Assembly: GCA_026936335.1 (NCBI GenBank)
Contig: JAPMXV010000054.1
Location: 62,001-126,000 of the forward strand
Direction: 5' to 3'
Length of the DNA: 64,000 nt
Source of the DNA: Mantamonas sphyraenae STR306
Lineage: Eukaryota > Protista > CRuMs
A program made the translations under genes and the position numbers. Shown here in pieces: positions 2,482 to 60,538 of this stretch. Every line of letters starts with the position of its first letter. Positions within the stretch are counted from its first letter, which is position 1. The notes beneath the pieces were generated by a model. It did not search any database. It was not told the origin of the DNA and was given only the letters and a program-made list of their open reading frames with translations.

Positions 2482-4972
<2,491 letters not shown>

Positions 4973-5094: not shown

Positions 5095-7683
<2,589 letters not shown>

Positions 7684-7857
7684 GGGCGGCAGCTGCAGCA
7701 AGTGAATTCCAAGTACATGTTGGTTGTTGGGGGGAATGGGAATGGGGTGGGGAAGGGGGGGGGGGGGGGGGGAGTGAAAGAGGGGGGGGTGGTGGGGTTG
7801 GGATGGTTGGGCTAACGTGGATCCCTCGATCAGATCACAAACGGATTTTCCAACACG

Positions 7858-8722: not shown

Positions 8723-8799
8723 TCGGAGAAGGTGGGGGAGAGGGAGAGGGTGTGGGTTTGGGGGAGGGGAGGGGGAGGAGGGGAGGGTTTATGGTGGTG

Positions 8800-9706: not shown

Positions 9707-9765
9707 TCTGAAGCGAAGATCTCAGTTTCCAAAACGGTGTGCCCACTTGCGGGAGCTCATCCAAC

Positions 9766-11350
9766 ATGAACTTTCTGAGCGCGAGTCGAGCTCAATCACC
9801 AAGCTGTGATGACGTCGTTTTGCGAGTCCGCAAACGAGTCTGGATCGAGTATACCCATGGGGAACTTGAAGGAACAGTGAACAGCGTCATCGCCGCCTTC
9901 GAGGAGTGCGGAGTCGAAAAAGGATCCAGAATCCTGTGTGTACTGGAGGACACCGGTCATTTCTATCTCTTGGCATCCTACCTTGCCTGCGAACGGTACG
10001 GTATGGTTCTCGTACCGTGTCTCGCGCCTCGAGGTCGGCGTGTGCACAAGCAGAAGCCACGATTTGCATCGATTCTGTCGTCATGCCATATGCGATGCAC
10101 CCTTACTACCAAATCGGTGCAGAACATGTACAGAGAGGTTTTCGAAAGTCCCGTGCTGCTTGATGAACTTGAGCCAACAGCGAAAGTGTTTCAACCAAAA
10201 ACACCTCTCCCAAGCACGTTGGTTCTGCTCCAGTACAGCAGCGGAACTACGAGCAACGCCAAGCCGGTGCAAGTAGCCTTTGAGGATCTACATCACAACC
10301 TTCAGGTTCTCCAGTCGACGCTCCATGTGACCACGAACGGAGTGCAGTTTCGGTCTTGGCTTCCGTGGTGGCATGATCTGGGACTGATTTCGATGTTGCT
10401 GCTACCCTACTGGTGCTCCTGTGTCTCCCATCACGTTTCACCATTTGATTTTGTCACCGATCCATCAATGTGGCTCCTGGATTGTGGCAGATTGCCAGTC
10501 GTGAGCGCAACTCCAGATTTTGGGTTGCAGCTCGCTTTGCATCGCAAAGTAGACCTCGATTCAGTTCGTTGGCATGCCCTTATCCTGTGTGGGGAGGTCA
10601 ACCGTATGACCACTTGGGAAGCGACAAAGGCAGCATACCCCAGGTTGCACGAGACCCTTTGTCCCATGTATGGATCAGCAGAGACGACGTTGTGCGTGAC
10701 CTGCTCTTGGCGCCATTCATCCATGGTTGAAAGGGATGGGAGCGTCAGCAACGGAGGAGTCAAGCAGGATGCAAACATCCTCATCGTCGATTCTACAACG
10801 AGGAGTCAGACTGTGAGCATGGGAACTATAGGACTTGTCTTTGTTTCTCAGCCGTCGATCTCAACAGGATACTACAGAGGAGTTGCTGCAACTGGCCAAT
10901 TTCGAAAGTACATTCGTGGATTCGGACCATTCTACGAAACTGGTGACGAAGGACGAGTCACAAATGACGGCTTGTACTTGCGAGGTCGAATCAATGGATG
11001 TGTTTGTGTCGCAGGAGAGAACGTGTGGATGGAGGACATTGAGCATGCAATGACCCGTCTGTGCGAGGAGGCGAAGTGGTGCAGAAAGGGGAATGTGGCC
11101 GCCTGTCCAATGACAGACACCACACCACCATCGGTTGCTGTGTTTCAGGAGGTGATCAACACATCCAGTATCGACAAAAGGGAATGCGAACTCATAGCAG
11201 CATCTCTTCAACAAGCATTCCCACAGATTGAACTGATTATGACATTCTGCGATTCTGGAACCATGTAAGTGTGCAAGTGAAGAGACGTTGATGAACATTG
11301 CTCACACCAAAGCAGCGCAAAAACGACAAGTGGGAAACCAAACAGATCAA
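9766..11350 (+). other. NRPS loading domain: fatty acyl-AMP ligase (FAAL)-like adenylating domain
   Basis: LLQYSSGTTSNAKPV (FAAL FLQYTSGSTGxPKGV), SWLPWWHDLGLI (SWLPLYHDMGLI), PMYGSAETTL, YETGDEG, LYLRGR, and after splicing GTIAKTTSGKPNR (A10 motif IPKTTSGK). Confidence 0.8.
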
Positions 11351-14300
11351 AAACACTCAAAAAGCTGGAGAAGCAGCGCAACAATCGACCACAGGGATCC
11401 AACAGTGTACAAGCCGTGATTGCCAACTGCATGATGGCCACGTTGCAAGTGGAAAATCTGCCTTTGGACCAAAGCTTGTTCACGCTAGGCGGTGACAGTA
11501 TTCTGAGTATGCAAGTGGTGCAGAGACTGCAACGCGAGGGGCTTCGTGTGACAAGCAGTCAGGTGTATGAGCTGCAGACGGTGCGTGCGCTGGCTAATGC
11601 CCTTCAAGAAGATGCGAACACACAGCAGGGTTCACACGAGGATGTTGCAGTGGCAGCTGTGACGCAGTATGACGTGCACGAATGTGACGGAGAGGCACTG
11701 AGCAGACTGTACGAAGAAGCACGGCGCGGGGTGGTTGGCGCAACGAAGGAGATTGTGATGTGTGGATTGGGCACGGGGTATGTGGACCTTGGGAAGCGTC
11801 TGCTGTGTTGTGGAGACGCTTGGGTGATGTGTGCATGTGGAGACGGGCGTGTGACGATGTCCTACCGCGCAGAAGCTGTGGAATCTCCGCTGGAAGTGAT
11901 GCGGGGTGTGCTTGTGGGACTGGGACGAGAGGCTGTGATGCCGATGTCGTCGATGCAGCAAGGGATGGTGTTTCACTCGCTGCACAGCAGTGGCTCTGGG
12001 AAGCGGGTCCAGGAAGGACCTGCTGGTACCCCGAGTGCTACGTGGTCTACAGCCATGTTGGGCAGCGTGGTGGATGGCCGAGCAGAGTACGTCGAACACG
12101 GATTGCTGGAGATGGACAACCTGGACCGTGTGCATGCGTACGCAGAGGCATGGGCAGGCGCTTGTTCATCGCATGCCATGCTGCATGCAAGTGTGGAGTG
12201 GCCGTTCATGCGGATCGAGCGTCAGAGCACACTGAGAGTGGACTACGTGCGCGCTGACGGCTCCGATGTGATGAGGACGGTTGAAGCACACAAGAGTATC
12301 CCGATGCGACTCGACTTGGCACCGCTGGTGCGATTGCTGCTGGTGTTGCACAGGGACACGGGGAAGACAACGGTCCTGGTTACATTCCACCACGCTGTGC
12401 TTGACGGGTGGTCAAACGCGCTGCTGTTGCGGGAGATCAGTCTGCGATACATGGAGCAGTACGAAGGAAGCGTGGGTCGGGCCACAGCTATCGCAGGACA
12501 CACCGACCAGTTAGAGTATGCATGGTGGCTGTGGAACTCGAGCAAGGGGGATGCGCGACGACACTTTGCAGAACGGTTGAAGGGCGGCCCGGGTGGCAGT
12601 TTGGTGATGAACGAAGTGCAGCGCGAGCCGGCGGAGGAAGCACCGACGAAAGCCGTGGAGCGGATCACTGTGAAAGCACAGCTGCCTGCGGACGGGAACG
12701 AGGCACTGGCAGTGACAGTGAACACGCGAGTGCTTGCGGCATGGGCACTTGTGCTAAGCGAGCTGTGTGGACAACAACGAGTGACGGTTGGCATGACACT
12801 GAGTGGCCGACCCGGAAGCGTGGAGTCGACATCAAGGCTGGTTGGATTGTATGTGTGCACACTGCCACTGTGTGTGGACGTGGAACTGGGACTGGGGCTA
12901 GATGGTTACCTGGAGCGGGTGATGCGAGAACAGCAGCGCTTGCAAGAGTTCCAACACTGTGGGTTGCCGGAAGTTGCAGGGTGGTGTGGATACGGGCAGG
13001 CTGGAGAAATGTTCGACAGCGTTTCTGTGTTTGAGAACTACCCTGGGATGGATGGAGAAGGTGGGGTTGGAGAGACACTCACGGAAGAGAGTGTGCGACA
13101 ACCGTTCCGTGTTCACAGTGCGACGAGTGAGGAAGTGACGAACTATCCCGTGCTGCTGGCATCGACTGTGGACAAGAGACGTGGCGTGGTGGAAGTGCAC
13201 ATGGAGTTTTCGAATGCAGGGGGAGGCATGGCACGTGCCGTGCGCGAACGGTTGGCGGAGCAACTGGAGGGGTACCTGCGTGTGCTGTGCAGGGTGAAGA
13301 AGGGGAAACCACAGACACAAGTGGGCCGCGTGGTGGGAAAGGGATGGACACGATCAGTTGGGATGGACGGAGTGACACGTGCACGTTCAGCGTTGTCAGG
13401 GCTGGGCGGGAGGACAGGAGAGGTGACTTTGCACGTGTGCAGCGTGAGCAAGGGTGAAGTACATCTGAGCCGTGGGATGGTGTACGCGATGGGGAGGCAG
13501 GTGGCAGCGGAGCTGACAAGCATGACAGTTGGGGCAGGACCTGGTACGGTGGTGGGAGTGTGTCTGGAAGCACAGAGTGTGTACACAGTGGCATGCTGTC
13601 TGGGAGTGTGGATGTGTGGAGCAGCAGTGCTGTGTATGGAACCGCGGAACCCGGACTCGAAGCTGGAGGCACTTGCGTTGGAGGCGCAGCCGTGTGCTGT
13701 GATCACGACGCCGGAGCTGGCGGATGCACGGAACTTGGGCAGGTTGTGCGGCAACAGGATTGTGTGTGTGGCAACCGAAGGAGTCCAGGTAGCACGCAGG
13801 GGAGTTGGTGGCAGCTGGGATGGTGAACGACCATGTGTGCGTGTGTGTGGTGGTTTGGTGGCGTATGTGATTGCGACGAGCGGAACGACGGCCGGCAGAA
13901 GCAAGCTTGTGCCTGTGACACACCGGGCGTGGATGAATACGTGCATGGACAGTCAAGTCGGTGTGGCTGGTGTAATGGTCAGCGATGTTGACAGCGGAGC
14001 AAGGGTGTACCAGTTTGCATCTTTGCAGTTTGATGCCAGCATGTACGAGATTGGCTGTGCTCTTGCACGAGGAAGTAACCATGGGCATTTGGTGCACCAG
14101 CGCGATGGGGAAGGACTTTTGGGTGGAATGTCGCTGCTGGACGAAAGGTGCACATTGGCATTGATACCTCCTGTGGTGTTGACCCTGGGATGTAGGGCGC
14201 GCTTGCTTGATGAAGAAGTGGTCGTGGACACACTGGTGACGGGTGGCGAAGCATGCAGTGCAGCAGTCGTGAACGAGTGGACCCGTGTGTGTGTGGGAGA

Positions 14301-17300
14301 ATGATCCATGCGTACGGGCCGTCGGAGGACGCAATTGTGTCAAGCGCACTGATGGTGGAAAGCTCTGGTGTGAAAGAGGCACCAGGGATTGGCAGTGCAC
14401 TTGACGGGAAGACAGCGTTGGTTCTGGACGGACTGATGCGCCCTCGACCGACGACAGGGGTAGGCCTGCTGCACATGACGGGAGTGGGGATCGCTCACGG
14501 ATACATGGGGCGGCCACGACTGACGGCAGAACGGTTCCTGCCGTTTGATGACGGCCTGGTGCTGTACAACACAGGAGATCTTGTGCGTGTACACTCTGCC
14601 GGGACGATGGAGTTTGTGGGGAGAAAGGACTTTCAGCTGAAGGTGCGCGGACACCGAGTGGAAGCACAGGCGGTGGAGGGTGTGCTGGAAACCCACGAGC
14701 GTGTGGCACAAGCAGTGGTCCGGAAGCATGGCACGGGTCTAGTTGGATACGTTGCGTGTGTTGGGGGCGTGGACGCAAGCATGGAGATGTTGCAAGCGAG
14801 CCTGTACGAGCAACTGCGAACCGCATTGCCGCCGTATGCGGTTCCGACCAGCGTGGTTGCACTGGACGCGATGCCAACAACGCTGAACGGTAAGATCGAC
14901 CTGCGTCGTCTTCCGAACCCAGGGGACACGGGTGTGCAGCTGGTGCGAAGCGAGTATGCGGCGGCCGAGAGCGAGATGGAAGTAACGGTGGCGAAAGCAT
15001 TTGGTGCTGTACTTGGGGTGGATGAGGTTGGGCTGGACGACAGCTTCTTCACGCTAGGCGGTGACAGTATTCTGAGTATGCAAGTGGTGCAGAGACTGCA
15101 ACGCGAGGGGCTGCGTGTGACAAGCAGTCAGGTGTATGAGCTGCAGACGGTGCGTGCGCTGGCTAATGCCCTTCAAGACGATGCGAACACACAGCAGGGT
15201 TCACACGAGGATGTTGCAGTGGCAGCTGTGACGCAGTATGACGTGCACGAATGTGACGGAGAGGCACTGAGCAGACTGTACGAAGAAGCACGGCGCGGGG
15301 TGGTTGGCGCAACGAAGGAGATTGTGATGTGTGGATTGGGCACGGGGTATGTGGACCTTGGGAAGCGTCTGCTGTGTTGTGGAGACGCTTGGGTGATGTG
15401 TGCATGTGGAGACGGGCGTGTGACGATGTCCTACCGCGCAGAAGCTGTGGAATCTCCGCTGGAAGTGATGCGGGGTGTGCTTGTGGGACTGGGACGAGAG
15501 GCTGTGATGCCGATGTCGTCGATGCAGCAAGGGATGGTGTTTCACTCGCTGCACAGCAGTGGCTCTGGGAAGCGGGTCCAGGAAGGACCTGCTGGTACCC
15601 CGAGTGCTACGTGGTCTACAGCCATGTTGGGCAGCGTGGTGGATGGCCGAGCAGAGTACGTCGAACACGGATTGCTGGAGATGGACAACCTGGACCGTGT
15701 GCATGCGTACGCAGAGGCATGGGCAGGCGCTTGTTCATCGCATGCCATGCTGCATGCAAGTGTGGAGTGGCCGTTCATGCGGATCGAGCGTCAGAGCACA
15801 CTGAGAGTGGACTACGTGCGCGCTGACGGCTCCGATGTGATGAGGACGGTTGAAGCACACAAGAGCATCCCGATGCGACTCGACTTGGCACCGCTGGTGC
15901 GATTGCTGCTGGTGTTGCACAGGGACACGGGGAAGACTACGGTACTGGTTACATTCCACCACGCTGTGCTTGACGGGTGGTCAAACGCGCTGCTGTTGCG
16001 GGAGATCAGTCTGCGATACATGGAGCAGTACGAAGGAAGCGTGGGTCGGGCCACAGCTATCGCAGGACACACCGACCAGTTAGAGTATGCATGGTGGCTG
16101 TGGAACTCGAGCAAGGGGGATGCGCGACGACACTTTGCAGAACGGTTGAAGGGCGGCCCGGGTGGCAGTTTGGTGATGAACGAAGTGCAGCGCGAGCCGG
16201 CGGAGGAAGCACCGACGAAAGCCGTGGAGCGGATCACTGTGAAAGCACAGCTGCCTGCGGACGGGAACGAGGCACTGGCAGTGACAGTGAACACGCGAGT
16301 GCTTGCGGCATGGGCACTTGTGCTAAGCGAGCTGTGTGGACAACAACGAGTGACGGTTGGCATGACACTGAGTGGCCGACCCGGAAGCGTGGAGTCGACA
16401 TCAAGGCTGGTTGGATTGTATGTGTGCACACTGCCACTGTGTGTGGACGTGGAACTGGGACTGGGGCTAGATGGTTACCTGGAGCGGGTGATGCGAGAAC
16501 AGCAGCGCTTGCAAGAGTTCCAACACTGTGGGTTGCCGGAAGTTGCAGGGTGGTGTGGATACGGGCAGGCTGGAGAAATGTTCGACAGCGTTTCTGTGTT
16601 TGAGAACTACCCTGGGATGGATGGAGAAGGTGGGGTTGGAGAGACACTCACGGAAGAGAGTGTGCGACAACCGTTCCGTGTTCACAGTGCGACGAGTGAG
16701 GAAGTGACGAACTATCCCGTGCTGCTGGCATCGACTGTGGACAAGAGACGTGGCGTGGTGGAAGTGCACATGGAGTTTTCGAATGCAGGGGGAGGCATGG
16801 CACGTGCCGTGCGCGAACGGTTGGCGGAGCAACTGGAGGGGTACCTGCGTGTGCTGTGCAGGGTGAAGAAGGGGATGCCACAGACACAAGTGGGCCGCGT
16901 GGTGGGAAAGGGATGGACACGATCAGTTGGGATGGACGGAGTGACACGTGCACGTTCAGCGTTGTCAGGGCTGGGCGGGAGGACAGGAGAGGTGACTTTG
17001 CACGTGTGCAGCGTGAGCAAGGGTGAAGTACATCTAAGCCGTGGGATGGTGTACGCGATGGGGAGGCAGGTGGCAGCGGAGCTGACAAGCATGACAGTTG
17101 GGGCAGGACCTGGTACGGTGGTGGGAGTGTGTCTGGAAGCACAGAGTGTGTACACAGTGGCATGCTGTCTGGGAGTGTGGATGTGTGGAGCAGCAGTGCT
17201 GTGTATGGAACCGCGGAACCCGGACTCGAAAGCTGGAGGCACTTGCGTTGGAGGCGCAGCCGTGTGCTGTGATCACGACGCCGGAGCTGGCGGATGCACG

Positions 17301-20300
17301 GAACTTGGGCAGGTTGTGCGGCAACAGGATTGTGTGTGTGGCAACCGAAGGAGTCCAGGTAGCACGCGGGGGAGTTGGTGGCAGCTGGGATGGTGAACGA
17401 CCATGTGTGCGTGTGTGTGGTGGTTTGGTGGCGTATGTGATTGCGACGAGCGGAACGACGGCCGGCAGAAGCAAGCTTGTGCCTGTGACACACCGGGCGT
17501 GGATGAATACGTGCATGGACAGTCAAGTCGGTGTGGCTGGTGTAATGGTCAGCGATGTTGACAGCGGAGTAAGGGTGTACCAGTTTGCATCTTTGCAGTT
17601 TGATGCCAGCATGTACGAGATTGGCTGTGCTCTTGCACGAGGAAGTAACCATGGGCATTTGGTGCACCAGCGCGATGGGGAAGGACTTTTGGGTGGAATG
17701 TCGCTGCTGGACGAAAGGTGCACGTTGGCATTGATACCTCCTGTGGTGTTGACCCTGGGATGTAGGGCGCGCTTGCTTGATGAAGAAGTGGTCGTGGACA
17801 CACTGGTGACGGGTGGCGAAGCATGCAGTGCAGCAGTCGTGAACGAGTGGACCCGTGTGTGTTGGAGAATGATCCATGCGTACGGGCCGTCGGAGGACGC
17901 AATTGTGTCAAGCGCACTGATGGTGGAAAGCTCTGGTGTGAAAGAGGCACCAGGGATTGGCAGTGCACTTGACGGGAAGACAGCGTTGGTTCTGGACGGA
18001 CTGATGCGCCCTCGACCGACGACAGGGGTAGGCCTGCTGCACATGACGGGAGTGGGGATCGCTCACGGATACATGGGGCGGCCACGACTGACGGCAGAAC
18101 GGTTCCTGCCGTTTGATGACGGCCTGGTGCTGTACAACACAGGAGATCTTGTGCGTGTACACTCTGCCGGGACGATGGAGTTTGTGGGGAGAAAGGACTT
18201 TCAGCTGAAGGTGCGCGGACACCGAGTGGAAGCACAGGCGGTGGAGGGTGTGCTGGAAACCCACGAGCGTGTGGCACAAGCAGTGGTCCGGAAGCATGGC
18301 ACGGGTCTAGTTGGATACGTTGCGTGTGTTGGGGGCGTGGACGCAAGCATGGAGATGTTGCAAGCGAGCCTGTACGAGCAACTGCGAACCGCATTGCCGC
18401 CGTATGCGGTTCCGACCAGCGTGGTTGCACTGGACGCGATGCCAACAACGCTGAACGGTAAGATCGACCTGCGTCGTCTTCCGAACCCAGGGGACACGGG
18501 TGTGCAGCTGGTGCGAAGCGAGTATGCGGCGGCCGAGAGCGAGATGGAAGTAACGGTGGCGAAAGCATTTGGTGCTGTACTTGGGGTGGATGAGGTTGGG
18601 CTGGACGACAGCTTCTTCACGCTAGGCGGTGACAGCATTCTGAGTATGCAAGTGGTGCAGAGACTGCAACGCGAGGGGCTGCGTGTGACAAGCAGTCAGG
18701 TGTATGAGCTGCAGACGGTGCGTGCGCTGGCTAATGCCCTTCAAGACGATGCGAACACACAGCAGGGTTCACACGAGGATGTTGCAGTGGCAGCTGTGAC
18801 GCAGTATGACGTGCACGAATGTGACGGAGAGGCACTGAGCAGACTGTACGAAGAAGCACGGCGCGGGGTGGTTGGCGCAACGAAGGAGATTGTGATGTGT
18901 GGATTGGGCACGGGGTATGTGGACCTTGGGAAGCGTCTGCTGTGTTGTGGAGACGCCTGGGTGATGTGTGCATGTGGAAACGGGCGTGTGACGATGTCCT
19001 ACCGCGCAGAAGCTGTGGAATCTCCGCTGGAAGTGATGCGGGGTGTGCTTGTGGGACTGGGACGAGAGGCTGTGATGCCGATGTCGTCGATGCAGCAAGG
19101 GATGGTGTTTCACTCGCTGCACAGCATTGGTTCTGGGAAGCGGGTCGAGGAAGAACCTGCTGGTACCCCGAGTGCTACGGGGTCTACAGCCATGTTGGGC
19201 AACGTGGTGGATGGCCGAGCAGAGTACGTCGAACACGGATTGCTGGAGATGGACAACCTGGACCGTGTGCATGCGTACGCAGAGGCATGGGCAGGCGCTT
19301 GTTCATCGCATGCCATGCTGCATGCAAGTGTGGAGTGGCCGTTCATGCGGATCGAGCGTCAGAGCACACTGAGAGTGGACTACGTGCGCGCTGACGGCTC
19401 CGATGTGATGAGGACGGTTGAAGCACACAAGAGCATCCCGATGCGACTCGACTTGGCACCGCTGGTGCGATTGCTGCTGGTGTTGCACAGGGACACGGGG
19501 AAGACAACGGTCCTGGTTACATTCCACCACGCTGTGCTTGACGGGTGGTCAAACGCTCTGCTGTTGCGGGAGATCAGTCTGCGATACATGGAGCAGTACG
19601 AAGGAAGCGTGGGTCGGGCCACAGCTATCGCAGGACACACCGACCAGTTAGAGTATGCATGGTGGCTGTGGAACTCGAGCAAGGGGGATGCGCGACGACA
19701 CTTTGCAGAACGGTTGAAGGGCGGCCCGGGTGGCAGTTTGGTGATGAACGAAGTGCAGCGCGAGCCGGTGGAGGAAGCACCGACGAAAGCCGTGGAGCGG
19801 ATCACTGTGAAAGCACAGCTGCCTGCGGACGGGAACGAGGCACTGGCAGTGACAGTGAACACGCGAGTGCTTGCGGCATGGGCACTTGTGCTAAGCGAGC
19901 TGTGTGGACAACAACGAGTGACGGTTGGCATGACACTGAGTGGCCGACCCGGAAGCGTGGAGTCGACATCAAGGCTGGTTGGATTGTATGTGTGCACACT
20001 GCCACTGTGTGTGGACGTGGAACTGGGACTGGGGCTAGATGGTTACCTGGAGCGGGTGATGCGAGAACAGCAGCGCTTGCAAGAGTTCCAACACTGTGGG
20101 TTGCCGGAAGTTGCAGGGTGGTGTGGATACGGGCAGGCTGGAGAAATGTTCGACAGCGTTTCTGTGTTTGAGAACTACCCTGGGATGGATGGAGAAGGTG
20201 GGGTTGGAGAGACACTCACGGAAGAGAGTGTGCGACAACCGTTCCGTGTTCACAGTGCGACGAGTGAGGAAGTGACGAACTATCCCGTGCTGCTGGCATC

Positions 20301-47300: not shown

Positions 47301-50300
47301 GGGGTGGTTGGCGCAACGAAGGAGATTGTGATGTGTGGATTGGGCACGGGGTATGTGGACCTTGGGAAGCGTCTGCTGTGTTGTGGAGACGCTGGGTGAT
47401 GTGTGCATGTGGAAACGGGCGTGTGACGATGTCCTACCGCGCAGAAGCTGTGGAATCTCCGCTGGAAGTGATGCGGGGTGTGCTTGTGGGACTGGGACGA
47501 GAGGCTGTGATGCCGATGTCGTCGATGCAGCAAGGGATGGTGTTTCACTCGCTGCACAGCAGTGGTTCTGGGAAGCGGGTCGAGGAAGAACCTGCTGGTA
47601 CCCCGAGTGCTACGTGGTCTACAGCCATGTTGGGCAACGTGGTGGATGGCCGAGCAGAGTACGTCGAACACGGATTGCTGGAGATGGACAACCTGGACCG
47701 TGCACATGCGTACGCAGAGGCATGGGCAGGCGCTTGTTCATCGCATGCCATGCTGCATGCAAGTGTGGAGTGGCCGTTCATGCGGATCGAGCGTCAGAGC
47801 ACACTGAGAGTGGACTACGTGCGCGCTGACGGCTCCGATGTGATGAGGACGGTTGAAGCACACAAGAGCATCCCGATGCGACTCGACTTGGCACCGCTGG
47901 TGCGATTGCTGCTGGTGTTGCACAGGGACACGGGGAAGACAACGGTCCTGGTTACATTCCACCACGCTGTGCTTGACGGGTGGTCAAACGCTCTGCTGTT
48001 GCGGGAGATCAGTCTGCGATACATGGAGCAGTACGAAGGAAGCGTGGGTCGGGCCACAGCTATCGCAGGACACACCGACCAGTTAGAGTATGCATGGTGG
48101 CTGTGGAACTCGAGCAAGGGGGATGCGCGACGACACTTTGCAGAACGGTTGAAGGGCGGCCCGGGTGGCAGTTTGGTGATGAACGAAGTGCAGCGCGAGC
48201 CGGCGGAGGAAGCACCGACGAAAGCCGTGGAGCGGATCACTGTGAAAGCACAGCTGCCTGCGGACGGGAACGAGGCACTGGCAGTGACAGTGAACACGCG
48301 AGTGCTTGCGGCATGGGCACTTGTGCTAAGCGAGCTGTGTGGACAACAACGAGTGACGGTTGGCATGACACTGAGTGGCCGACCCGGAAGCGTGGAGTCG
48401 ACATCAAGGCTGGTTGGATTGTATGTGTGCACACTGCCACTGTGTGTGGACGTGGAACTGGGACTGGGGCTAGATGGTTACCTGGAGCGGGTGATGCGAG
48501 AACAGCAGCGCTTGCAAGAGTTCCAACACTGTGGGTTGCCGGAAGTTGCAGGGTGGTGTGGATACGGGCAGGCTGGAGAAATGTTCGACAGCGTTTCTGT
48601 GTTTGAGAACTACCCTGGGATGGATGGAGAAGGTGGGGTTGGAGAGACACTCACGGAAGAGAGTGTGCGACAACCGTTCCGTGTTCACAGTGCGACGAGT
48701 GAGGAAGTGACGAACTATCCCGTGCTGCTGGCATCGACTGTGGACAAGAGACGTGGCGTGGTGGAAGTGCACATGGAGTTTTCGAATGCAGGGGGAGGCA
48801 TGGCACGTGCCGTGCGCGAACGGTTGGCGGAGCAACTGGAGGGGTACCTGCGTGTGCTGTGCAGGGTGAAGAAGGGGAAACCACAGACACAAGTGGGCCG
48901 CGTGGTGGGAAAGGGATGGACACGATCAGTTGGGATGGACGGAGTGACACGTGCACGTTCAGCGTTGTCAGGGCTGGGCGGGAGGACAGGAGAGGTGACT
49001 TTGCACGTGTGCAGCGTGAGCAAGGGTGAAGTACATCTGAGCCGTGGGATGGTGTACGCGATGGGGAGGCAGGTGGCAGCGGAGCTGACAAGCATGACAG
49101 TTGGGGCAGGACCTGGTACGGTGGTGGGAGTGTGTCTGGAAGCACAGAGTGTGTACACAGTGGCATGCTGTCTGGGAGTGTGGATGTGTGGAGCAGCAGT
49201 GCTGTGTATGGAACCGCGGAACCCGGACTCGAAGCTGGAGGCACTTGCGTTGGAGGCGCAGCCGTGTGCTGTGATCACGACGCCGGAGCTGGCGGATGCA
49301 CGGAACTTGGGCAGGTTGTGCGGCAACAGGATTGTGTGTGTGGCAACCGAAGGAGTCCAGGTAGCACGCGGGGGAGTTGGTGGCAGCTGGGATGGTGAAC
49401 GACCATGTGTGCGTGTGTGTGGTGGTTTGGTGGCGTATGTGATTGCGACGAGCGGAACGACGGCCGGCAGAAGCAAGCTTGTGCCTGTGACACACCGGGC
49501 GTGGATGAATACGTGCATGGACAGTCAAGTCGGTGTGGCTGGTGTAATGGTCAGCGATGTTGACAGCGGAGCAAGGGTGTACCAGTTTGCATCTTTGCAG
49601 TTTGATGCCAGCATGTACGAGATTGGCTGTGCTCTTGCACGAGGAAGTAACCATGGGCATTTGGTGCACCAGCGCGATGGGGAAGGACTTTTGGGTGGAA
49701 TGTCGCTGCTGGACGAAAGGTGCACGTTGGCATTGATACCTCCTGTGGTGTTGACCCTGGGATGTAGGGCGCGCTTGCTTGATGAAGAAGTGGTCGTGGA
49801 CACACTGGTGACGGGTGGCGAAGCATGCAGTGCAGCAGTCGTGAACGAGTGGACCCGTGTGTGTTGGAGAATGATCCATGCGTACGGGCCGTCGGAGGAC
49901 GCAATTGTGTCAAGCGCACTGATGGTGGAAAGCTCTGGTGTGAAAGAGGCACCAGGGATTGGCAGTGCACTTGACGGGAAGACAGCGTTGGTTCTGGACG
50001 GGCTGATGCGCCCTCGACCGACGACAGGGGTAGGCCTGCTGCACATGACGGGAGTGGGGATCGCTCACGGATACATGGGGCGGCCACGACTGACGGCAGA
50101 ACGGTTCCTGCCGTTTGATGACGGCCTGGTGCTGTACAACACAGGAGATCTTGTGCGTGTACACGCTTCCGGGACGATGGAGTTTGTGGGGAGAAAGGAC
50201 TTTCAGTTGAAGGTGCGCGGACACCGAGTGGAAGCACAGGCGGTGGAGGGTGTGCTGGAAACCCACGAGCGTGTGGCACAAGCAGTGGTCCGGAAGCATG

Positions 50301-53300
50301 GCACGGGTCTAGTTGGATACGTTGCGTGTGTTGGGGGCGTGGACGCAAGCATGGAGATGTTGCAAGCAAGCCTGTACGAACAACTGCGAAGCGCACTGCC
50401 GCCGTATGCGGTTCCGACCAGCGTGGTTGCACTGGACGCGATGCCAACAACGCTGAACGGTAAGATCGACCTGCGTCGTCTTCCGAACCCAGGGGACACG
50501 GGTGTGCAGCTGGTGCGAAGCGAGTATGCGGCGGCCGAGAGCGAGATGGAAGTAACGGTGGCGAAAGCATTTGGTGCTGTACTTGGGGTGGATGAGGTTG
50601 GGCTGGACGACAGCTTCTTCACGCTAGGCGGTGACAGCATTCTGAGTATGCAAGTGGTGCAGAGACTGCAACGCGAGGGGCTGCGTGTGACAAGCAGTCA
50701 GGTGTATGAGCTGCAGACGGTGCGTGCGCTGGCTAATGCCCTTCAAGACGATGCGAACACACAGCAGGGTTCACACGAGGATGTTGCAGTGGCAGCTGTG
50801 ACGCAGTATGACGTGCACGAATGTGACGGAGAGGCACTGAGCAGACTGTACGAAGAAGCACGGCGCGGGGTGGTTGGCGCAACGAAGGAGATTGTGATGT
50901 GTGGATTGGGCACGGGGTATGTGGACCTTGGGAAGCGCCTGCTGTGTTGTGGAGACGCTTGGGTGATGTGTGCATGTGGAGACGGGCGTGTGACGATGTC
51001 CTACCGCGCAGAAGCTGTGGAATCTCCGCTGGAAGTGATGCGGGGTGTGCTTGTGGGACTGGGACGAGAGGCTGTGATGCCGATGTCGTCGATGCAGCAA
51101 GGGATGGTGTTTCACTCGCTGCACAGCAGTGGTTCTGGGAAGCGGGTCGAGGAAGAACCTGCTGGTACCCCGAGTGCTACGTGGTCTACAGCCATGTTGG
51201 GCAACGTGGTGGATGGCCGAGCAGAGTACGTCGAACATGGATTGCTGGAGATGGACAACCTGGACCGTGCACATGCGTACGCAGAGGCATGGGCGTGCGC
51301 TTGTTCATCGCATGCCATGCTGCATGCAAGTGTGGAGTGGCCGTTCATGCGGATCGAGCGTCAGAGCACACTGAGAGTGGACTACGTGCGTGCTGACGGC
51401 TCCGATGTGATGAGGACGGTTGAAGCACACAAGAGCATCCCGATGCGACTCGACTTGGCACCGCTGGTGCGATTGCTGCTGGTGTTGCACAGGGACACGG
51501 GGAAGACTACGGGTACTGGTTACATTCCACCACGCTGTGCTTGACGGGTGGTCAAACGCGCTGCTGTTGCGGGAGATCAGTCTGCGATACATGGAGCAGT
51601 ACGAAGGAAGCGTGGGTCGGGCCACAGCTATCGCAGGACACACCGACCAGTTAGAGTATGCATGGTGGCTGTGGAACTCGAGCAAGGGGGATGCGCGACG
51701 ACACTTTGCAGAACGGTTGAAGGGCGGCTCGGGTGGCAGTTTGGTGATGAACGAAGTGCAGCGCGAGCCGGTGGAGGAAGCACCGACGAAAGCCGTGGAG
51801 CGGATCACTGTGAAAGCACAGCTGCCTGCGGACGGGAACGAGGCACTGGCAGTGACAGTGAACACGCGAGTGCTTGCGGCATGGGCACTTGTGCTAAGCG
51901 AGCTGTGTGGACAACAACGAGTGACGGTTGGCATGACACTGAGTGGCCGACCCGGAAGCGTGGAGTCGACATCAAGGCTGATTGGATTGTATGTGTGCAC
52001 ACTGCCACTGTGTGTGGACGTGGAACTGGGACTGGGGCTAGATGGTTACCTGGAGCGGGTGATGCGAGAACAGCAGCGCTTGCAAGAGTTCCAACACTGT
52101 GGGTTGCCGGAAGTTGCAGGGTGGTGTGGATACGGGCAGGCTGGAGAAATGTTCGACAGCGTTTCTGTGTTTGAGAACTACCCTGGGATGGATGGAGAAG
52201 GTGGGGTTGGAGAGACACTCACGGAAGAGAGTGTGCGACAACCGTTCCGTGTTCACAGTGCGACGAGTGAGGAAGTGACGAACTATCCCGTGCTGCTGGC
52301 ATCGACTGTGGACAAGAGACGTGGCGTGGTGGAAGTGCACATGGAGTTTTCGAATGCAGGGGGAGGCATGGCACGTGCCGTGCGCGAACGGTTGGCGGAG
52401 CAACTGGAGGGGTACCTGCGTGTGCTGTGCAGGGTGAAGAAGGGGATGCCACAGACACAAGTGGGCCGCGTGGTGGGAAAGGGATGGACACGATCAGTTG
52501 GGATGGACGGAGTGACACGTGCACGTTCAGCGTTGTCAGGGCTGGGCGGGAGGACAGGAGAGGTGACTTTGCACGTGTGCAGCGTGAGCAAGGGTGAAGT
52601 ACATCTGAGCCGTGGGATGGTGTACGCGATGGGGAGGCAGGTGGCAACGGAGCTGACAAGCATGACAGTTGGGGCAGGACCTGGTACGGTGGTGGGAGTG
52701 TGTCTGGAAGCACAGAGTGTGTACACAGTGGCATGCTGTCTGGGAGTGTGGATGTGTGGAGCAGCAGTGTTGTGCATGGAACCGCGTAACCCGGACTCGA
52801 AGCTGGAGGCACTTGCGTTGGAGGCGCAGCCGTGTGCTGTGATCACGACGCCGGAGCTGGCGGATGCACGGAACTTGGGCAGGTTGTGCGGCAACAGGAT
52901 TGTGTGTGTGGCAACCGAAGGAGTCCAGGTAGCACGCGGGGGAGTTGGTGGCAGCTGGGATGGTGTGAACGACCATGTGTGCGTGTGTGTGGTGGTTTGG
53001 TGGCGTATGTGATTGCGACGAGCGGAACGACGGCCGGCAGAAGCAAGCTTGTGCCTGTGACACACCGGGCATGGATGAATACGTGCTTCGCAGTCAAGTC
53101 GAAGTGGCTTGTCCACGTCAACACGTGTCGAGCAAATGTTTTGCTCTTTGCAGTTTGACGCCAGCATGTACGAGACTGGGATGTGGGGCTTGCATTGGAA
53201 GCAACCAAGTGGTATTTGGTGCATTTGAACGATGGCTTGGAAGGACTTTTGGAGAGCTCGTGCGTTCGAAAGGTTGCGTCCGTACCACCTGTGCTGTTGG

Positions 53301-56300
53301 CGAGGCACGTAGTACGCGGATCTGCTCGGTTGAAGAACTGGTCGTGGTACACTGGTGACGGGTGGCTAGCATGCAGTGCAGCTGTCGTGAACGATGGACC
53401 CGGCTCCTTGGAGACATGATCCATGCGTACGGGCCGTCGGAAGACGCGATTGTGTCAAGCGCACTGACTGGTGAAAGCTCTGGTGTGAATGAGGCACCAA
53501 GCATTCGCAGTGCACTTGACGGGAAGACAGCGTTGGTTCTGGACGGGCTGATGCGCCCTCGACCGACGACAGGGGTAGGCCTGCTGCACATGACGGGAGT
53601 GGGGATCGCTCACGGATACATGGGGCGGCCACGACTGACGGCAGAACGGTTCCTGCCGTTTGATGACGGCCTGGTGCTGTACAACACAGGAGATCTTGTG
53701 CGTGTACACGCTTCCGGGACGATGGAGTTTGTGGGGAGAAAGGACTTTCAGCTGAAGGTGCGCGGACACCGAGTGGAAGCACAGGCGGTGGAGGGTGTGC
53801 TGGAAACCCACGAGCGTGTGGCACAAGCAGTGGTCCGGAAGCATGGCACGGGTCTAGTTGGATACGTTGCGTGTGTTGGGGGCGTGGACGCAAGCATGGA
53901 GATGTTGCAAGCAAGCCTGTACGAGCAACTGCGAAGCGCATTGCCGCCGTATGCGGTTCCGACCAGCGTGGTTGCACTGGACGCGATGCCAACAACGCTG
54001 AACGGTAAGATCGACCTGCGTCGTCTTCCGAACCCAGGGGACACGGGTGTGCAGCTGGTGCGAAGCGAGTATGCGGCGGCCGAGAGCGAGATGGAAGTAA
54101 CGGTGGCGAAAGCATTTGGTGCTGTACTTGGGGTGGATGAGGTTGGGCTGGACGACAGCTTCTTCACGCTAGGTGGTGACAGCATTCTGAGTATGCAAGT
54201 GGTGCAGAGACTGCAACGCGAGGGGCTGCGTGTGACAAGCAGTCAGGTGTATGAGCTGCAGACGGTGCGTGCGCTGGCTAATGCCCTTCAAGACGATGCG
54301 AACACACAGCAGGGTTCACACGAGGATGTTGCAGTGGCAGCTGTGACGCAGTATGACGTGCACGAATGTGACGGAGAGGCACTGAGCAGACTGTACGAAG
54401 AAGCACGGCGCGGGGTGGTTGGCGCAACGAAGGAGATTGTGATGTGTGGATTGGGCACGGGGTATGTGGACCTTGGGAAGCGCCTGCTGTGTTGTGGAGA
54501 CGCTTGGGTGATGTGTGCATGTGGAGACGGGCGTGTGACGATGTCCTACCGCGCAGAAGCTGTGGAATCTCCGCTGGAAGTGATGCGGGGTGTGCTTGTG
54601 GGACTGGGACGAGAGGCTGTGATGCCGATGTCGTCGATGCAGCAAGGGATGGTGTTTCACTCGCTGCACAGCAGTGGTTCTGGGAAGCGGGTCGAGGAAG
54701 AACCTGCTGGTACCCCGAGTGCTACGTGGTCTACAGCCATGTTGGGCAACGTGGTGGATGGCCGAGCAGAGTACGTCGAACATGGATTGCTGGAGATGGA
54801 CAACCTGGACCGTGCACATGCGTACGCAGAGGCATGGGCGTGCGCTTGTTCATCGCATGCCATGCTGCATGCAAGTGTGGAGTGGCCGTTCATGCGGATC
54901 GAGCGTCAGAGCACACTGAGAGTGGACTACGTGCGTGCTGACGGCTCCGATGTGATGAGGACGGTTGAAGCACACAAGAGCATCCCAATGCGACTCGACT
55001 TGGCACCGCTGGTGCGATTGCTGCTGGTGTTGCACAGGGACACGGGGAAGACTACGGTACTGGTTACATTCCACCACGCTGTGCTTGACGGGTGGTCAAA
55101 CGCTCTGCTGTTGCGGGAGATCAGTCTGCGATACATGGAGCAGTACGAAGGAAGCGTGGGTCGGGCCACAGCTATCGCAGGACACACCGACCAGTTAGAG
55201 TATGCATGGTGGCTGTGGAACTCGAGCAAGGGGGATGCGCGACGACACTTTGCAGAACGGTTGAAGGGCGGCTCGGGTGGCAGTTTGGTGATGAACGAAG
55301 TGCAGCGCGAGCCGGTGGAGGAAGCACCGACGAAAGCCGTGGAGCGGATCACTGTGAAAGCACAGCTGCCTGCGGACGGGAACGAGGCACTGGCAGTGAC
55401 AGTGAACACGCGAGTGCTTGCGGCATGGGCACTTGTGCTAAGCGAGCTGTGTGGACAACAACGAGTGACGGTTGGCATGACACTGAGTGGCCGACCCGGA
55501 AGCGTGGAGTCGACATCAAGGCTGATTGGATTGTATGTGTGCACACTGCCACTGTGTGTGGACGTGGAACTGGGACTGGGGCTAGATGGTTACCTGGAGC
55601 GGGTGATGCGAGAACAGCAGCGCTTGCAAGAGTTCCAACACTGTGGGTTGCCGGAAGTTGCAGGGTGGTGTGGATACGGGCAGGCTGGAGAAATGTTCGA
55701 CAGCGTTTCTGTGTTTGAGAACTACCCCGGAATGGATGGAGAAGGTGGGGTTGGAGAGACACTCACGGAAGAGAGTGTGCGACAACCGTTCCGTGTTCAC
55801 AGTGCGACGAGTGAGGAAGTGACGAACTATCCCGTGCTGCTGGCATCGACTGTGGACAAGAGACGTGGCGTGGTGGAAGTGCACATGGAGTTTTCGAATG
55901 CAGGGGGAGGCATGGCACGTGCCGTGCGCGAACGGTTGGCGGAGCAACTGGAGGGGTACCTGCGTGTGCTGTGCAGGGTGAAGAAGGGGATGCCACAGAC
56001 ACAAGTGGGCCGCGTGGTGGGAAAGGGATGGACACGATCAGTTGGGATGGACGGAGTGACACGTGCACGTTCAGCGTTGTCAGGGCTGGGCGGGAGGACA
56101 GGAGAGGTGACTTTGCACGTGTGCAGCGTGAGCAAGGGTGAAGTACATCTGAGCCGTGGGATGGTGTACGCGATGGGGAGGCAGGTGGCAACGGAGCTGA
56201 CAAGCATGACAGTTGGGGCAGGACCTGGTACGGTGGTGGGAGTGTGTCTGGAAGCACAGAGTGTGTACACAGTGGCATGCTGTCTGGGAGTGTGGATGTG

Positions 56301-58452
56301 TGGAGCAGCAGTGTTGTGCATGGAACCGCGTAACCCGGACTCGAAGCTGGAGGCACTTGCGTTGGAGGCGCAGCCGTGTGCTGTGATCACGACGCCGGAG
56401 CTGGCGGATGCACGGAACTTGGGCAGGTTGTGCGGCAACAGGATTGTGTGTGTGGCAACCGAAGGAGTCCAGGTAGCACGCGGGGGAGTTGGTGGCAGCT
56501 GGGATGGTGAACGACCATGTGTGCGTGTGTGTGGTGGTTTGGTGGCGTATGTGATTGCGACGAGCGGAACGACGGCCGGCAGAAGCAAGCTTGTGCCTGT
56601 GACACACCGGGCATGGATGAATACGTGCTTCGCTTACTCGAAGTACTTGTCCACGTCAACACGTGTCGGGCAAATGTTGTCTATGCAGTTCGACGCGAGC
56701 ATGCTTGAACTGGGATGGGGCTTGATTGGAGGCAGCCAAGTGGTACATTGTGATTTGAACGATGGCTTGTTGTACGTGTTGGAGAGCTCGTGCGTTCAGG
56801 TTGCGTCCGTACCACCGGTGCTGTTGGCGAGGCACGAGTACGCGGATCTCTCGGTTGAAGGACTGCAAATGGTATCTGCAGGAGGGGAAGCTACAACGAA
56901 AGAGATGCTGCGCAAATGGGCGGGCTCCTTGGTATACATACAAGCGTACGGTCCTTCGGAAGACTCGATTGTCTCAACGATGACTGTGTTGGGTGAATAT
57001 GACACACCGAGCATCGGTAGTGCACTTGACGGGAAGACAGCGTTGGTTCTGGACGGACTGATGCGCCCTCGACCGACGACAGGGGTAGGCCTGCTGCACG
57101 TGACGGGAGTGGGGATCGCTCACGGATACATGGGGCGGCCACGACTGACGGCAGAACGGTTCCTGCCGTTTGATGACGGCCTGGTGCTGTACAACACAGG
57201 AGATCTTGTGCGTGTACACGCTTCCGGGACGATGGAGTTTGTGGGGAGAAAGGACTTTCAGCTGAAGGTGCGCGGACACCGAGTGGAAGCACAGGCGGTG
57301 GAGGGTGTGCTGGAAACCCACGAGCGTGTGGCACAAGCAGTGGTCCGGAAGCATGGCACGGGTCTAGTTGGATACGTTGCGTGTGTTGGGGGCGTGGACG
57401 CAAGCATGGAGATGTTGCAAGCAAGCCTGTACGAGCAACTGCGAACCGCATTGCCGCCGTATGCGGTTCCGACCAGCGTGGTTGCACTGGACGCGATGCC
57501 AACAACGCTGAACGGTAAGATCGACTTGCGTCGTCTTCCGAACCCAGGGGACACGGGTGTGCAGCTGGTGCGAAGCGAGTATGCGGCGGCCGAGAGCGAG
57601 ATGGAAGTAACGGTGGCGAAAGCATTTGGTGCTGTACTTGGGTTGGATGAGGTTGGGCTGGACGACAGCTTCTTCACGCTAGGCGGTGACAGCATTCTGA
57701 GTATGCAAGTGGTGCAGAGACTGCAACGCGAGGGGCTGCGTGTGACAAGCAGTCAGGTGTATGAGCTGCAGACGGTGCGGGCTTTGGCGTCTTTTCATGC
57801 CCCCCATTTGAAACGTGGGTCAGTTTTGATTGAACTGACAAAGAATGACGGTCCGGTGGTTGTACTCTTCCCTGGTGCTGCAACAACTTTTCATTGCTTC
57901 GAGCGTTTGATTGAGGAAGCAACCCCTGCGCACCATTTGTACGCTGTTGATGACGGCTATCTTTACGGTCGTTCTGATGCTCATGCGACTTTGATGGATC
58001 TGGCGGTCGCCGTTAGCTCGGAGCTGTTGTTGTTCGTTCCGGTTGTGGAGAACGTCCAACTTGTGGGCTGGTCGTACGGTGGTGCAGTCGCGCATGAAGT
58101 TGGCGTGCTGTGTCATCATACAGTGACTCAAGTCACCTTGTTGGACGCCCCTGTGTGCCCTGTGAGTGTGCCGTGGACCGTTTCTCCTGGATCCAATGGC
58201 AACGACACTGACTTGATAACTGCCGACGCTTCGTTGCGTCATCATCACTTACTGGAACACGTGACCAGTTCTTCAGTTCAACGGACTGTGTTGGTGCTGA
58301 GCGATTCAGCACGGCGCACCAATCTCCATGACTACCATCGCTGGGGCGAATTCATTGAGACATCAGACTTTCACATTGTTGCCGTTCCAGGTGACCATCA
58401 CGGCATGTTAGATTCTTCAGAATTCATTGACGTGGTGATGCGACTGCAGTAA
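9766..58452 (+). CDS. Giant multimodular nonribosomal (lipo)peptide synthetase: FAAL-like - T - (C-A-T)x13 - TE, ~16,200 aa; intron 11265-11315; many apparent assembly frameshifts
   Basis: 14 carrier motifs FTLGGDSILSM (GG codons at 11488, 15057, 18625, 22191, 25709, 29284, 32854, 36418, ~39987, 43495, 47061, 50627, 54172, 57682). 13 C domains with HHAVLDGWS. 13 A domains with YVIATSGTT, FDAS, AYGPSE, YNTGDL, GRKDFQLKVRGHRVE and NGKIDL. Terminal thioesterase present. All on one strand with no intergenic gaps. Confidence 0.9.
11265..11315 (+). other. 51-nt spliceosomal intron within the NRPS loading domain
   Basis: GTAAGT donor at 11265, branch-like TGCTCAC at ~11299-11305, AAGCAG acceptor ending at 11315. 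It contains in-frame stop codons. Removing it fuses ORF 9739-11268 in frame to ORF 11416-14304 and restores AT|C-GCA-AAA-ACG-ACA-AGT-GGG-AAA (I-A-K-T-T-S-G-K). Confidence 0.85.
24652..25048 (+). other. Module 4: B-type A-domain specificity subdomain (indel-rich copy)
   Basis: Matches the B-type DNA (cttcgcttactcg...gacacaccaagcatcggt) with many small indels and short A-type intrusions. Confidence 0.75.
42445..42834 (+). other. Module 9: B-type A-domain specificity subdomain
   Basis: 390 bp encoding FAYSKYLSTSTRVGQMLSMQFDASMLELGW...SAGGEAT...IQAYGPSEDSIVSTMTVLGEYDTPSIG in place of the 447-bp A-type segment. Confidence 0.9.
53087..53508 (+). other. Module 12: fine-grained A/B mosaic specificity subdomain (frame-broken)
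   Basis: Short tracts of A-type and B-type sequence alternate, and the unit length is intermediate (3545 bp). Confidence 0.75.
56629..57018 (+). other. Module 13: B-type A-domain specificity subdomain
   Basis: Essentially identical to 42445-42834 and lies within the uninterrupted ORF 53362-58452. Confidence 0.9.
57780..58452 (+). other. Terminal type I thioesterase domain of the NRPS
   Basis: VVLFPGAA, nucleophile elbow LVGWSYGG (GxSxG), LLDAP acid and VPGDHHGML histidine give a complete catalytic triad. Stop TAA at 58450-58452. Confidence 0.9.
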
Positions 58453-58459
58453 AATCGAC

Positions 58460-60538
58460 CTACTCGTCAAACAACGCATCCAGCTCATCCTTCAGCACCC
58501 TCACCTCCTTCGCCCACCTCCCCCTCTTGTGACTCATCTCCTCCTCCGCCTGCGCGTCGATCAGGTCTTCATCCAGCTCAATGTCCATCTCCTCCGCAGC
58601 CTTGCGAAACCAATCATTCTCGGCCTTTTGCTTGCGCTTCTTCCTCAACTTGCTGTCCAGCTTTTTCGCCGTGTGCACGCGTCGCCTGAGGCGTTTGTAC
58701 TCCACCAGATCAATGTCCATGAGGGGCACCTTGTCGAGGCGCTTGCCCATGCGTTGCATGAGCCGCTTGAACATCCCCTCCTCCTTGGGCCCCACGAGCA
58801 GCACGGACGTGCCCGCCTGCGACGCGCGTGCTGTGCGCCCTGCCCTGTGCACGTACGTGTCTGCGGCCCTTGGCACCTGATAATGGATGACATGCGACAC
58901 CTGCGGGATGTCCAACCCGCGTGCGGCCACGTCTGTGGCCACGAGCACCGCGTCCTTCTGCGCCCTGAACCGATCCATGTTCTTGAGCCGCTGCCGCTGC
59001 TGCATCTGTGCGTGCAGGGGCAGCACAGGCACGCGCAACAGTTCAAAGATGTGCACGATGCGTCGGATGGCATCGATGCTGTTGGCAAACACCAGCCGCC
59101 TGCCCTGGCCCTGGGTCAGCGTGAGCAGCACGTACAGGTACGAATCCTTGTCGATATCGATGCAATGGATGCGATACTCGCTCAGTGCCTGTGCGGTGAT
59201 CTTGGCCGACGTCAGGTCGATGTGTGCCAGCTTGCGTTGCAGTCGCAGCTTGCGTTGCAGCTCCTCCATCTTCTTGCCCGTTTCACTGGCCGCGTCCAGG
59301 GCCATGGTTGCCGAGAACAGGAATGTTTGGCGTGGTTTGGCCGTGCCCTTTGCCAGCTGCGCCTTTTTGGCCTCCTCCTCATGCTGTTGGATCAGCGTGA
59401 CAATCTGGTCCAGCTCCGCGTAGTGGCCCTTTTCGATCATGCGATCCGCCTCGTCGATGACCAGGAAGCGCAACGAGCCCAAGTGTTCCAGAAAGGGAGT
59501 GCCGTCCGAGTACAGGTCCCACAGACGGCCTGGTGTGGCCACGACAATGGCCGGCTTCTTTGCCAGCAGCCTGTGTTGCTTCTGCACACTCATCCCTCCA
59601 AACACAGTCACCACATGCACCTGTGGGATATGCTGCGCAATGTCCCTCACGTGTGCCGCCACCTGTGTCGCCAGCTCCCGTGTCGGCGTCACCACCAGTG
59701 CCAGCGGCTGCGTCAGCGTCATCTGCGGGTTTTTCCTGTACATGATGGCCAGCTGCGCCACAATGGGGATGGCAAAGGCCAGTGTTTTCCCCGAGCCCTG
59801 TGAGAGTGTAAGGAAGGAGGGGGGGGTAAGTGGGTTGAGGGAAAGGTGTGAGGTGGTGGGTCGTTCACTCCCCGTTGCATGTTTCCGCCTGACCACCTAC
59901 AGTCTCTGCGGCACCCAGCACGTCTTTGCGGTCCCTCCAACCAGCTTCGATGCTCTTGCGTTGGATTTCCGTGGGTTTGCTAAACCCCAGTGTGTCCAGT
60001 GCCTGCAGCACGCCCTGCGGCAAGTTGAACGGACTCCATGCCGAAAGATCCGTCGTCGTCGTCGTCGTCGTCGTCGTTTTCTCCTCCCCCTCTCCATCCT
60101 CCACCTGCTTTCCCTTTTTCTCCTTCTTCTCCTTCTTCTCCTTCTTCTCCTTCCTCTCCTTCTTCTTCTTCTTCTTTGCCTCGCTCTTGTCCACACGCGC
60201 CCGTTTCGAGTCGTGGTCCACCTCCTGCTCGTCCCCGCCTCTCCCACATCTCCCACTTGCTTTCGTTTCCTCGTTGCCTCCTCTGCACCTGCTCCTGCAG
60301 CAGCCCCTCTTGCTCCCTTTCTCCCTTGGTGCCTCTCTTGCGCCTTCTTCTCCTTGAGCTGTGCCTCGTTGCGTACAATCTTGCCGGAAAACTCACGGCC
60401 GTCGATGGTCTCCATGGAGATGAAGCCATAGGCCTGAATGGCTGCCAGTTGGTACTCTGGCACCTCCACACTTGTCCACTCGCTATCCTTCTGTGCCTTC
60501 CGCGTCAACTTGCGTCCCTTGTCTGCCATCTTGGTCAT
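58460..60538 (-). CDS. DDX24: DEAD-box RNA helicase DDX24/MAK5; exons ~60538-59901 and 59797-58460
   Basis: GFSKPTEIQ, GAAET|GSGKTLAF, PTRELA, DEADRMIEKGHYAEL, RQTFLFSAT, LHAQMQQRQRLKNMDRF, HRAGRTAR. GT-AG intron at 59900-59798. One missing G in a G-run near 60233 shifts the N-terminal frame, probably an error. Start is at 60538 or 60529. Confidence 0.88.

Follow-up and report, generated by a model that had tools for sequence, protein, structure and literature searches.

A 64,000-nucleotide (nt) stretch of the genome of Mantamonas sphyraenae STR306 (contig JAPMXV010000054.1, positions 62,001 to 126,000 of the forward strand; hereafter the window) carries what looks like a giant nonribosomal peptide synthetase (NRPS) gene of bacterial type, which raises the question of whether this gene belongs to its eukaryotic host, whether it is intact and what it might make. 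M. sphyraenae is a bacterivorous marine flagellate, and its group, the CRuMs, is a deep eukaryote lineage close to the base of Amorphea. Our literature search returned no paper tying Mantamonas to nonribosomal peptides, and no natural product from CRuMs was reported in the literature searched. Considering the architecture and catalytic motifs of the gene, its integration, the transcription of its modules and the selection acting on them, we regard it as probably a functional, host-encoded NRPS that would load an acyl group, add about 10-13 residues of two kinds and release the product through a thioesterase (TE).

The gene runs on the plus strand from an ATG at 9766 to a TAG at 58450-58452. 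Its domain order in the assembly is FAAL-like–T–(C-A-T)13–TE-like, with 14 carrier (T), 13 condensation (C) and 13 adenylation (A) domains followed by a terminal hydrolase. Repeated C-A-T modules with catalytic motifs (HHAVLDG, the A10 Lys of NGKID, GWSYG/LLD/GDHH and 14 GGDSI carrier motifs) characterize it as a multimodular NRPS, and its last open reading frame (ORF) scores above the TIGR01733 cut-off. The sequence-only reading had described the same domain order, with intact motifs, as one continuous gene of ~16,200 amino acids (aa). All 13 repeats and the motifs are indeed present in the assembly, although the module number is not secure, and the proposed size agrees with the 16,194-16,213 codons predicted, provided that the 13 modules are read in frame. 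Continuity, however, does not hold: the reading frame is interrupted in the assembly, the longest ORF being 1,697 aa, a 51-nt intron with two in-frame stops precedes the A10 motif of the FAAL-like domain, and 71 small insertions or deletions (indels) lie outside the substrate-specificity cassette of module 12. Exons and ORF pieces were searched separately against the databases, and the frame at the intron junction was read locally.

The indels, located by a script that took the observed in-frame module pieces as its ruler, are most likely not real but errors of the assembly, behaving like those of long reads. This conclusion is drawn because Illumina contigs contain 0 indels over 11465-14289 (such contigs drop rare variants, so that the stretch speaks for the majority module only), because, of the 71 indels, 65 occur in a single module each and 53 fall in simple repeats, and because the substitutions among modules are mostly shared, with 37 of 59 single-nucleotide polymorphisms (SNPs) common to several modules. 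The frame is open in the Illumina consensus of one module (the contigs do not span the whole array), and the unitigs of the two module kinds, X and Y (523 vs 466 nt), differ by 57 nt, an in-frame difference. Assembly indels are also found in single-copy genes, namely as a surplus base in the neighbouring THH1/TOM1-like gene (Table 1) and a frameshift in the MbtH-like gene described below. Moreover, the modules differ under purifying selection, with a pN/pS of about 0.3 (0.31-0.34; p=5e-4 versus equal rates, transition bias not being modelled) and 0 nonsense SNPs.

The assembly analysed here holds 25,061,354 bases in 78 contigs; it was published as a diploid FALCON assembly of 25.06 Mb in 78 contigs, built from PacBio RSII reads with an N50 of 11 kb and polished with Racon and Pilon, and the deposited runs are two of Illumina DNA and one each of PacBio and RNA (PMC10492846). 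The window sequence is present in four runs of one 2022 study, which behave as that same set. Run X3 is RNA: in it the intron of the thioredoxin-fold gene upstream is spliced out and nothing lies on 8690-11290, while module, X, Y and TE contigs are all present. Modules of the NRPS are transcribed, the 3′ ones appearing in the RNA run. Y exceeds X in RNA (28 vs 19; Y/X depth 1.47), as opposed to a Y/X of 0.38 in DNA, where X is 2.7 x Y, and at several sites the RNA contig has the variants of modules 9, 12 and 13, with those of modules 12-13 dominating and the one at 11799 exclusive to 12 and 13. This pattern fits a long mRNA with a 3′ bias. Carry-over of genomic DNA was rejected as the source of the signal, given the Y/X ratio and the lack of contigs in the single-copy region. 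The signals of the FAAL intron are the same as those of host introns, and the intron is presumably spliced.

The gene almost certainly belongs to M. sphyraenae itself. A single Illumina contig (contig 9 of run X2, 3,721 nt) covers the thioredoxin-fold gene, the TOM1-like gene, the FAAL-like domain and the loading carrier T0, and hence crosses the 5′ junction, for which the sequence-only reading had named spanning long reads as the check. Illumina contigs and RNA contigs alike contain the junction between the last carrier and the TE-like domain, and one of the latter extends 2,295 nt from the last carrier and, judged by its length, would enter the helicase gene. The xenic culture of M. sphyraenae (PMC10492846) makes one think of an NRPS of a co-cultured bacterium fused to the host chromosome in a chimeric contig, as does the fact that, among the matches listed, the named proteins are all bacterial except one weak fungal match. 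Nevertheless, the independent Illumina contig over the 5′ junction, the spliceosomal intron inside the gene, the RNA contig continuing from the last carrier and searches in which no close bacterial relative was found largely refute such a chimera, to which we give almost no credence. The host-type intron, the transcribed modules and the purifying selection bear out the proposal that the gene has been domesticated.

Several observations weigh against a working synthetase. No RNA contig lies over the FAAL-like domain or its intron, the contigs do not show which strand the RNA came from, and only 7 nt separate the gene from the end of the convergent helicase gene. The FAAL-specific insertion is ~20-22 aa shorter than in 7R7E and P0215, the TE-like domain falls below the Pfam Thioesterase model and is not picked by PF00975, and the domains are very divergent from their best relatives (28-39%), with odd insertions. 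The 5′ end without RNA, the unassigned RNA strand and the dozens of frameshifts in the assembly would suit a recently decayed pseudogene, in which the indels are real and the transcription is read-through from the helicase gene. However, the Illumina contigs have open frames, selection is purifying, assembly indels hit single-copy genes too, and X cassettes are present in the RNA run though at least 5 kb from the helicase stop; we therefore consider decay improbable and retain the functional, host-encoded NRPS as the preferred reading.

The array is truly multi-copy, with about 10-13 units (13,800-16,200 aa). Its repeats have a period of ~3566 nt for X and ~3510 nt for Y; apart from a cassette of 498 nt in X and 441 nt in Y, their DNA is 98.5-99.5% identical. 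The two kinds diverge only between points shortly past motif A3 and shortly past A5, where 49 of 150 aligned columns are identical; the C-A and Asub-T interfaces are unaffected. These near-identical repeats and two cassette kinds agree with the earlier suggestions that one module was amplified and that two building blocks are used. Across the whole array (window 11400-57800), GC skew is strongly positive (0.2-0.39) and the protein composition is rich in Val, Gly and Cys. The A-domain codes (Table 1), read by alignment to GrsA and LgrA, retain Asp235, suggesting that the substrates are alpha-amino acids, and loosely point to hydrophobic residues.

The order of modules in the assembly is X X X Y X X X X Y X X (mixed) Y. 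The cassette of module 12, with 401/512 identities to X and 383/480 to Y in a base-level interleave, is a consensus artefact of mixed reads or mixed alleles and not a third type; a loose end at 13853, considered as a possible third A-domain type, was traced to an unrelated locus on contig C56. Upstream of the cassette, modules 9, 12 and 13 (39988-57681) have a SNP set in common, a Y-type haplotype, so that module 12 could be of kind Y or else a copy of module 13 set in the wrong place. Module number and order are insecure because module 12 is a consensus mix and because the depths fit 11 modules (8X+3Y) equally well. Indeed, in three DNA runs X accounts for 0.72-0.73 of the module depth, the expectation being 8/11=0.727 for 11 modules and 9.5/13=0.731 for 13 modules with module 12 heterozygous, whereas 9/13=0.69 and 10/13=0.77 fit worse. 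We lean slightly towards a mis-assembled array, with ~11 modules or with alleles of differing length or order, the product of which would not be a single 13-mer. In addition to the X share and the interleave, this is favoured by the noisy module 4, by a module/unique depth of 10.0 (X2) or 7.6-13 (X1), and by the PacBio N50 of 11 kb in a diploid genome (PMC10492846), set against an array of 46 kb. Conversely, SNP patterns shared among modules can be used by an assembler, the 13-module alternative fits the X share too, and contig depth is not copy number, which makes depth-based module counts rough. Peptide length and sequence are not readable from the present assembly, and the ‘tridecapeptide’ of fixed order put forward by the sequence-only reading is unproven.

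At the start of the line, the loading domain likely works as an acyl-AMP ligase, given that its top 14 PDB matches are of FAAL/FadD type and that it is fused to a carrier; its scores lie below the NCBIfam cut-offs. PRK05691 is the top NCBIfam model for the FAAL-like domain and for the modules, in each case far below the family cut-off. The C domains score 208.6 bits with the DCL profile versus 84.6 with LCL and fall inside the DCL clade (support 97) on a long branch (2.19), in a tree built by FastTree only. C1 is ~99% identical to the other C domains and must therefore accept the acyl donor; with no dedicated starter C and with its accessory genes unlinked, the system is unlike a bacterial lipopeptide NRPS cluster. 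Placed after the last carrier, the TE-like domain has GxSxG/Asp/His motifs and weak matches (Abhydrolase_6, E 9e-5; AB3403 TE, E 0.024).

DCL domains usually come after an epimerization (E) domain (PMC8949500), and GGDSI, the motif of all the carriers here, precedes 64 of 66 sampled bacterial E domains. No E domain occurs in cis in the NRPS gene, and the DCL/GGDSI signature suggests that the module once sat behind an epimerase. An E-domain remnant in the T-C linker was considered and rejected as not significant, the HMM score of -2.1 lying in the range of shuffled sequences and 18 of 200 shuffles scoring no lower by hhalign; the AlphaFold model is unreliable in this linker, and an ESM Atlas look-up returned nothing. 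The best fold match of T-linker-C is PvdL PCP2...C3 (Z 32.5, rmsd 3.3, 470 residues).

The earlier remark that phosphopantetheinyl transferase (PPTase), MbtH and tailoring genes are absent holds for the 64,000-nt window, in which none was found, but not for the genome, where a PPTase gene and an MbtH-like gene lie on other contigs. The PPTase that an NRPS requires is encoded on contig C44 (Sfp/AASDHPPT-type, AASDHPPT_N + ACPS); an ORF adjoining it (L011:2230-3165) has a C-terminal zinc ribbon that presumably resembles TnpB/Fanzor. The MbtH-like gene (C43, ~328600-329030, minus; L013:1240-1670) sits among host genes, flanked on one side by a gene for a proteasome ATPase and on the other by one for a long-chain acyl-CoA synthetase-like protein, and has one assembly frameshift. 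Its product carries an acidic C-terminal extension, scores above the PF03621 cut-off, retains the conserved Trp residues, matches PA2412 with an E of 5e-11 and has the pyoverdine MbtH-like protein (MLP) as its top PDB match. We know of no native eukaryotic MLP, and none was found in our literature search. A stand-alone E domain on C4:142187-145171 (L001:56-3040), with all core motifs intact and PvdL E2 as its top PDB match, lies behind a rhodanese-like domain split by several introns and has a long Ser-rich insert. It is the sole other condensation-family domain found in the genome, and genome searches, whose counts are lower bounds, found no other NRPS or modular polyketide synthase. On contig C29 (L018:2437-8985), a 2,183-aa ORF combines two AMP-binding domains, a coiled coil and AIR9-type Ig domains without a carrier domain. 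The PPTase, MbtH-like and E genes may all serve this NRPS, the case being strongest for the PPTase and the MLP and weakest for E.

In a split line with epimerization in trans, the C4 rhodanese-like/E protein would dock on the GGDSI carriers and make D residues before their acceptance by the DCL domains. Every carrier is GGDSI and every C domain DCL, and the only other condensation-family domain found is this motif-complete E, with no other NRPS found to use it. On the other hand, E-less T(GGDSI)-DCL pairs are common in bacteria (35 in our sample), so that the signature may be a relic, and the E gene lies apart from the NRPS gene, encodes a fusion with a rhodanese-like domain and is burdened with the Ser-rich insert. 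We find such a split line rather unlikely. A little more doubtful still is the wider proposal of a dismantled T-E-DCL line, in which one epimerase-less module would have grown into a megadalton NRPS served in trans by E and MbtH-like genes, yielding a D-rich acyl-peptide whose alleles may differ in length or sequence by copy-number change and cassette swaps.

The neighbourhood is that of a host chromosome (Table 1). A DEAD-box helicase gene is confirmed at the 3′ side, where the sequence-only reading had placed DDX24, a putative subfamily assignment; the direct 5′ neighbour is a THH1/TOM1-like gene, the thioredoxin-fold gene (TXNDC9 in that reading) lying one further out. The THH1/TOM1-like gene shares a lower GC content (~50%) with the FAAL-like and TE-like domains, is absent from the RNA run and could be co-regulated with the NRPS. 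A cobalamin adenosyltransferase (MMAB-like) gene (window 60650-61417) stands head to head with the DEAD-box gene. At the other end, a minus-strand stop-free frame of 1,975 codons (window 2482-8406, noted together with 5803-7683) holds CDC5L (Myb_Cef) in its last 800 codons, while its first part overlaps other genes and is probably non-coding. A search for structured RNA found none.

Table 1. Features of the NRPS gene and its direct neighbours (window positions)
Position	Strand	Feature	Basis
8789..9706	-	THH1/TOM1-like membrane protein gene, head to head with NRPS, 59 nt between start codons; one surplus assembly base at 8987	
9766..11264	+	Exon 1, FAAL-like acyl-AMP ligase with short FAAL insertion	PDB and NCBIfam best matches are FAALs
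11265..11315	+	51-nt spliceosomal intron (GTAAGT...CTCAC...AG), two in-frame stops, just 5′ of FAAL A10 Lys motif KTTSGK	sequence
11419..11604	+	T0 loading carrier, C-terminal half identical in sequence to module carriers	sequence
11488..57681	+	Module array: 13 nearly identical repeats, each made up of carrier core, ~100-aa linker, DCL-type C, A and carrier start	repeat comparison
11488, 15057, 18625, 22191, 25709, 29284, 32854, 36418, 39988, 43495, 47061, 50627, 54172		Repeat starts	
11608..11937	+	T-C linker, ~90 aa longer than in bacterial T-DCL pairs, one per module	
12265..13215	+	Module 1 C domain, DCL-type like all others, no starter C	
13901..14400	+	X specificity cassette, code DAYLVGAIVK; likewise modules 2, 3, 5-8, 10, 11	
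24606..25055	+	Module 4 Y cassette, 22 small indels, poor consensus	
42401..42841	+	Module 9 Y cassette, code DALSSGAIVK	
53043..53515	+	Module 12 cassette, X/Y interleaved base by base	
56585..57025	+	Module 13 Y cassette, frame intact	
57613..57792	+	Last carrier domain	
57787..58452	+	Divergent TE-like domain of the alpha/beta hydrolase kind, with motifs GWSYG, LLD and GDHH; includes the NRPS stop	
58460..59900	-	Exon 2 and intron of the DEAD-box helicase gene, its stop and that of the NRPS 7 nt apart	

No close relative of the NRPS was found in 5.8 billion proteins, 1.8 billion representatives, JGI metagenomes or IMG/VR. The best relatives are bacterial, as expected for the bacterial-type domains proposed earlier, with 28-39% identity over whole domains and 0 orthologues; in the same searches, nothing exceeded ~39% over whole domains. 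A horizontal origin is likely. Cyclosporin and kolossin synthetases are giant single-chain NRPSs of the same size class as that of Mantamonas, but they lack FAAL loading and their modules are divergent. The D residue of cyclosporin is supplied by a trans-acting alanine racemase (PMC8949500), which acts on the free amino acid, whereas an E domain acts on a carrier-bound substrate. FAAL-ACP-initiated bacterial NRPSs (PvdL/PRK05691 type; vioprolide-type loading) share the FAAL-like - carrier - C-A-T start, and PvdL/pyoverdine proteins are the top PDB matches of the module (PCP2/C3), the E domain and the MLP. Unlike these, the Mantamonas NRPS scores far below the family cut-off, forms a single chain of 10-13 near-identical modules up to its TE, has no cis E or distinct starter C, and is encoded by an intron-containing gene of a eukaryotic host with its partners on other contigs. 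Natural recombination of A subdomains has been described in bacterial NRPSs (Baunach et al., PMC8097286) and likewise fits a difference limited to A3 to just after A5, although here the swap took place within one eukaryotic gene, among modules 99% identical. A 2015 survey of algae and protists found NRPSs to be rare, the largest microalgal one, from Bigelowiella, having 490 kDa and 10 domains (PMC4661987). The algal and protist NRPS/PKS systems of that survey also include giant lines with near-identical duplicated modules, while that of Mantamonas, in contrast to the Bigelowiella NRPS, would have ~36-42 domains and 1.5-1.8 MDa and is a pure NRPS from a heterotrophic CRuMs lineage.

Reasoning from the known chemistry of the domains, we envisage that one ancestral C-A-T module was copied in tandem ~10-13 times, the copies being kept alike by recombination, and that module kinds X and Y (~2.7 to 1) arose when nothing but the substrate-binding portion of the A domain was exchanged. 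The host Sfp-type PPTase would prime the carriers, the FAAL-like domain would put an acyl group on T0, and each A domain would load an alpha-amino acid, probably aided by the unlinked MbtH-like protein. The C domains would then lengthen the chain, and the TE would free a linear or cyclic acyl-peptide, predicted to consist mostly of X with some Y. Conceivably, the product could serve in defence, in the handling of prey or in the chemistry of the gliding surface.

This chemistry is already known; what is new is the host, the size, the homogenized DCL array and the dispersed E and MLP partners. With this locus, full-size NRPS chemistry reaches CRuMs, in an enzyme three to four times as large as the biggest protist NRPS of the 2015 survey. 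It also offers a clean natural example of an assembly line that grew through tandem duplication of modules together with A-subdomain swapping. Its unlinked MbtH-like and E genes make the use of a native eukaryotic MLP, and the action of an E domain in trans, testable, and since the organism is in culture, the product itself can be looked for.

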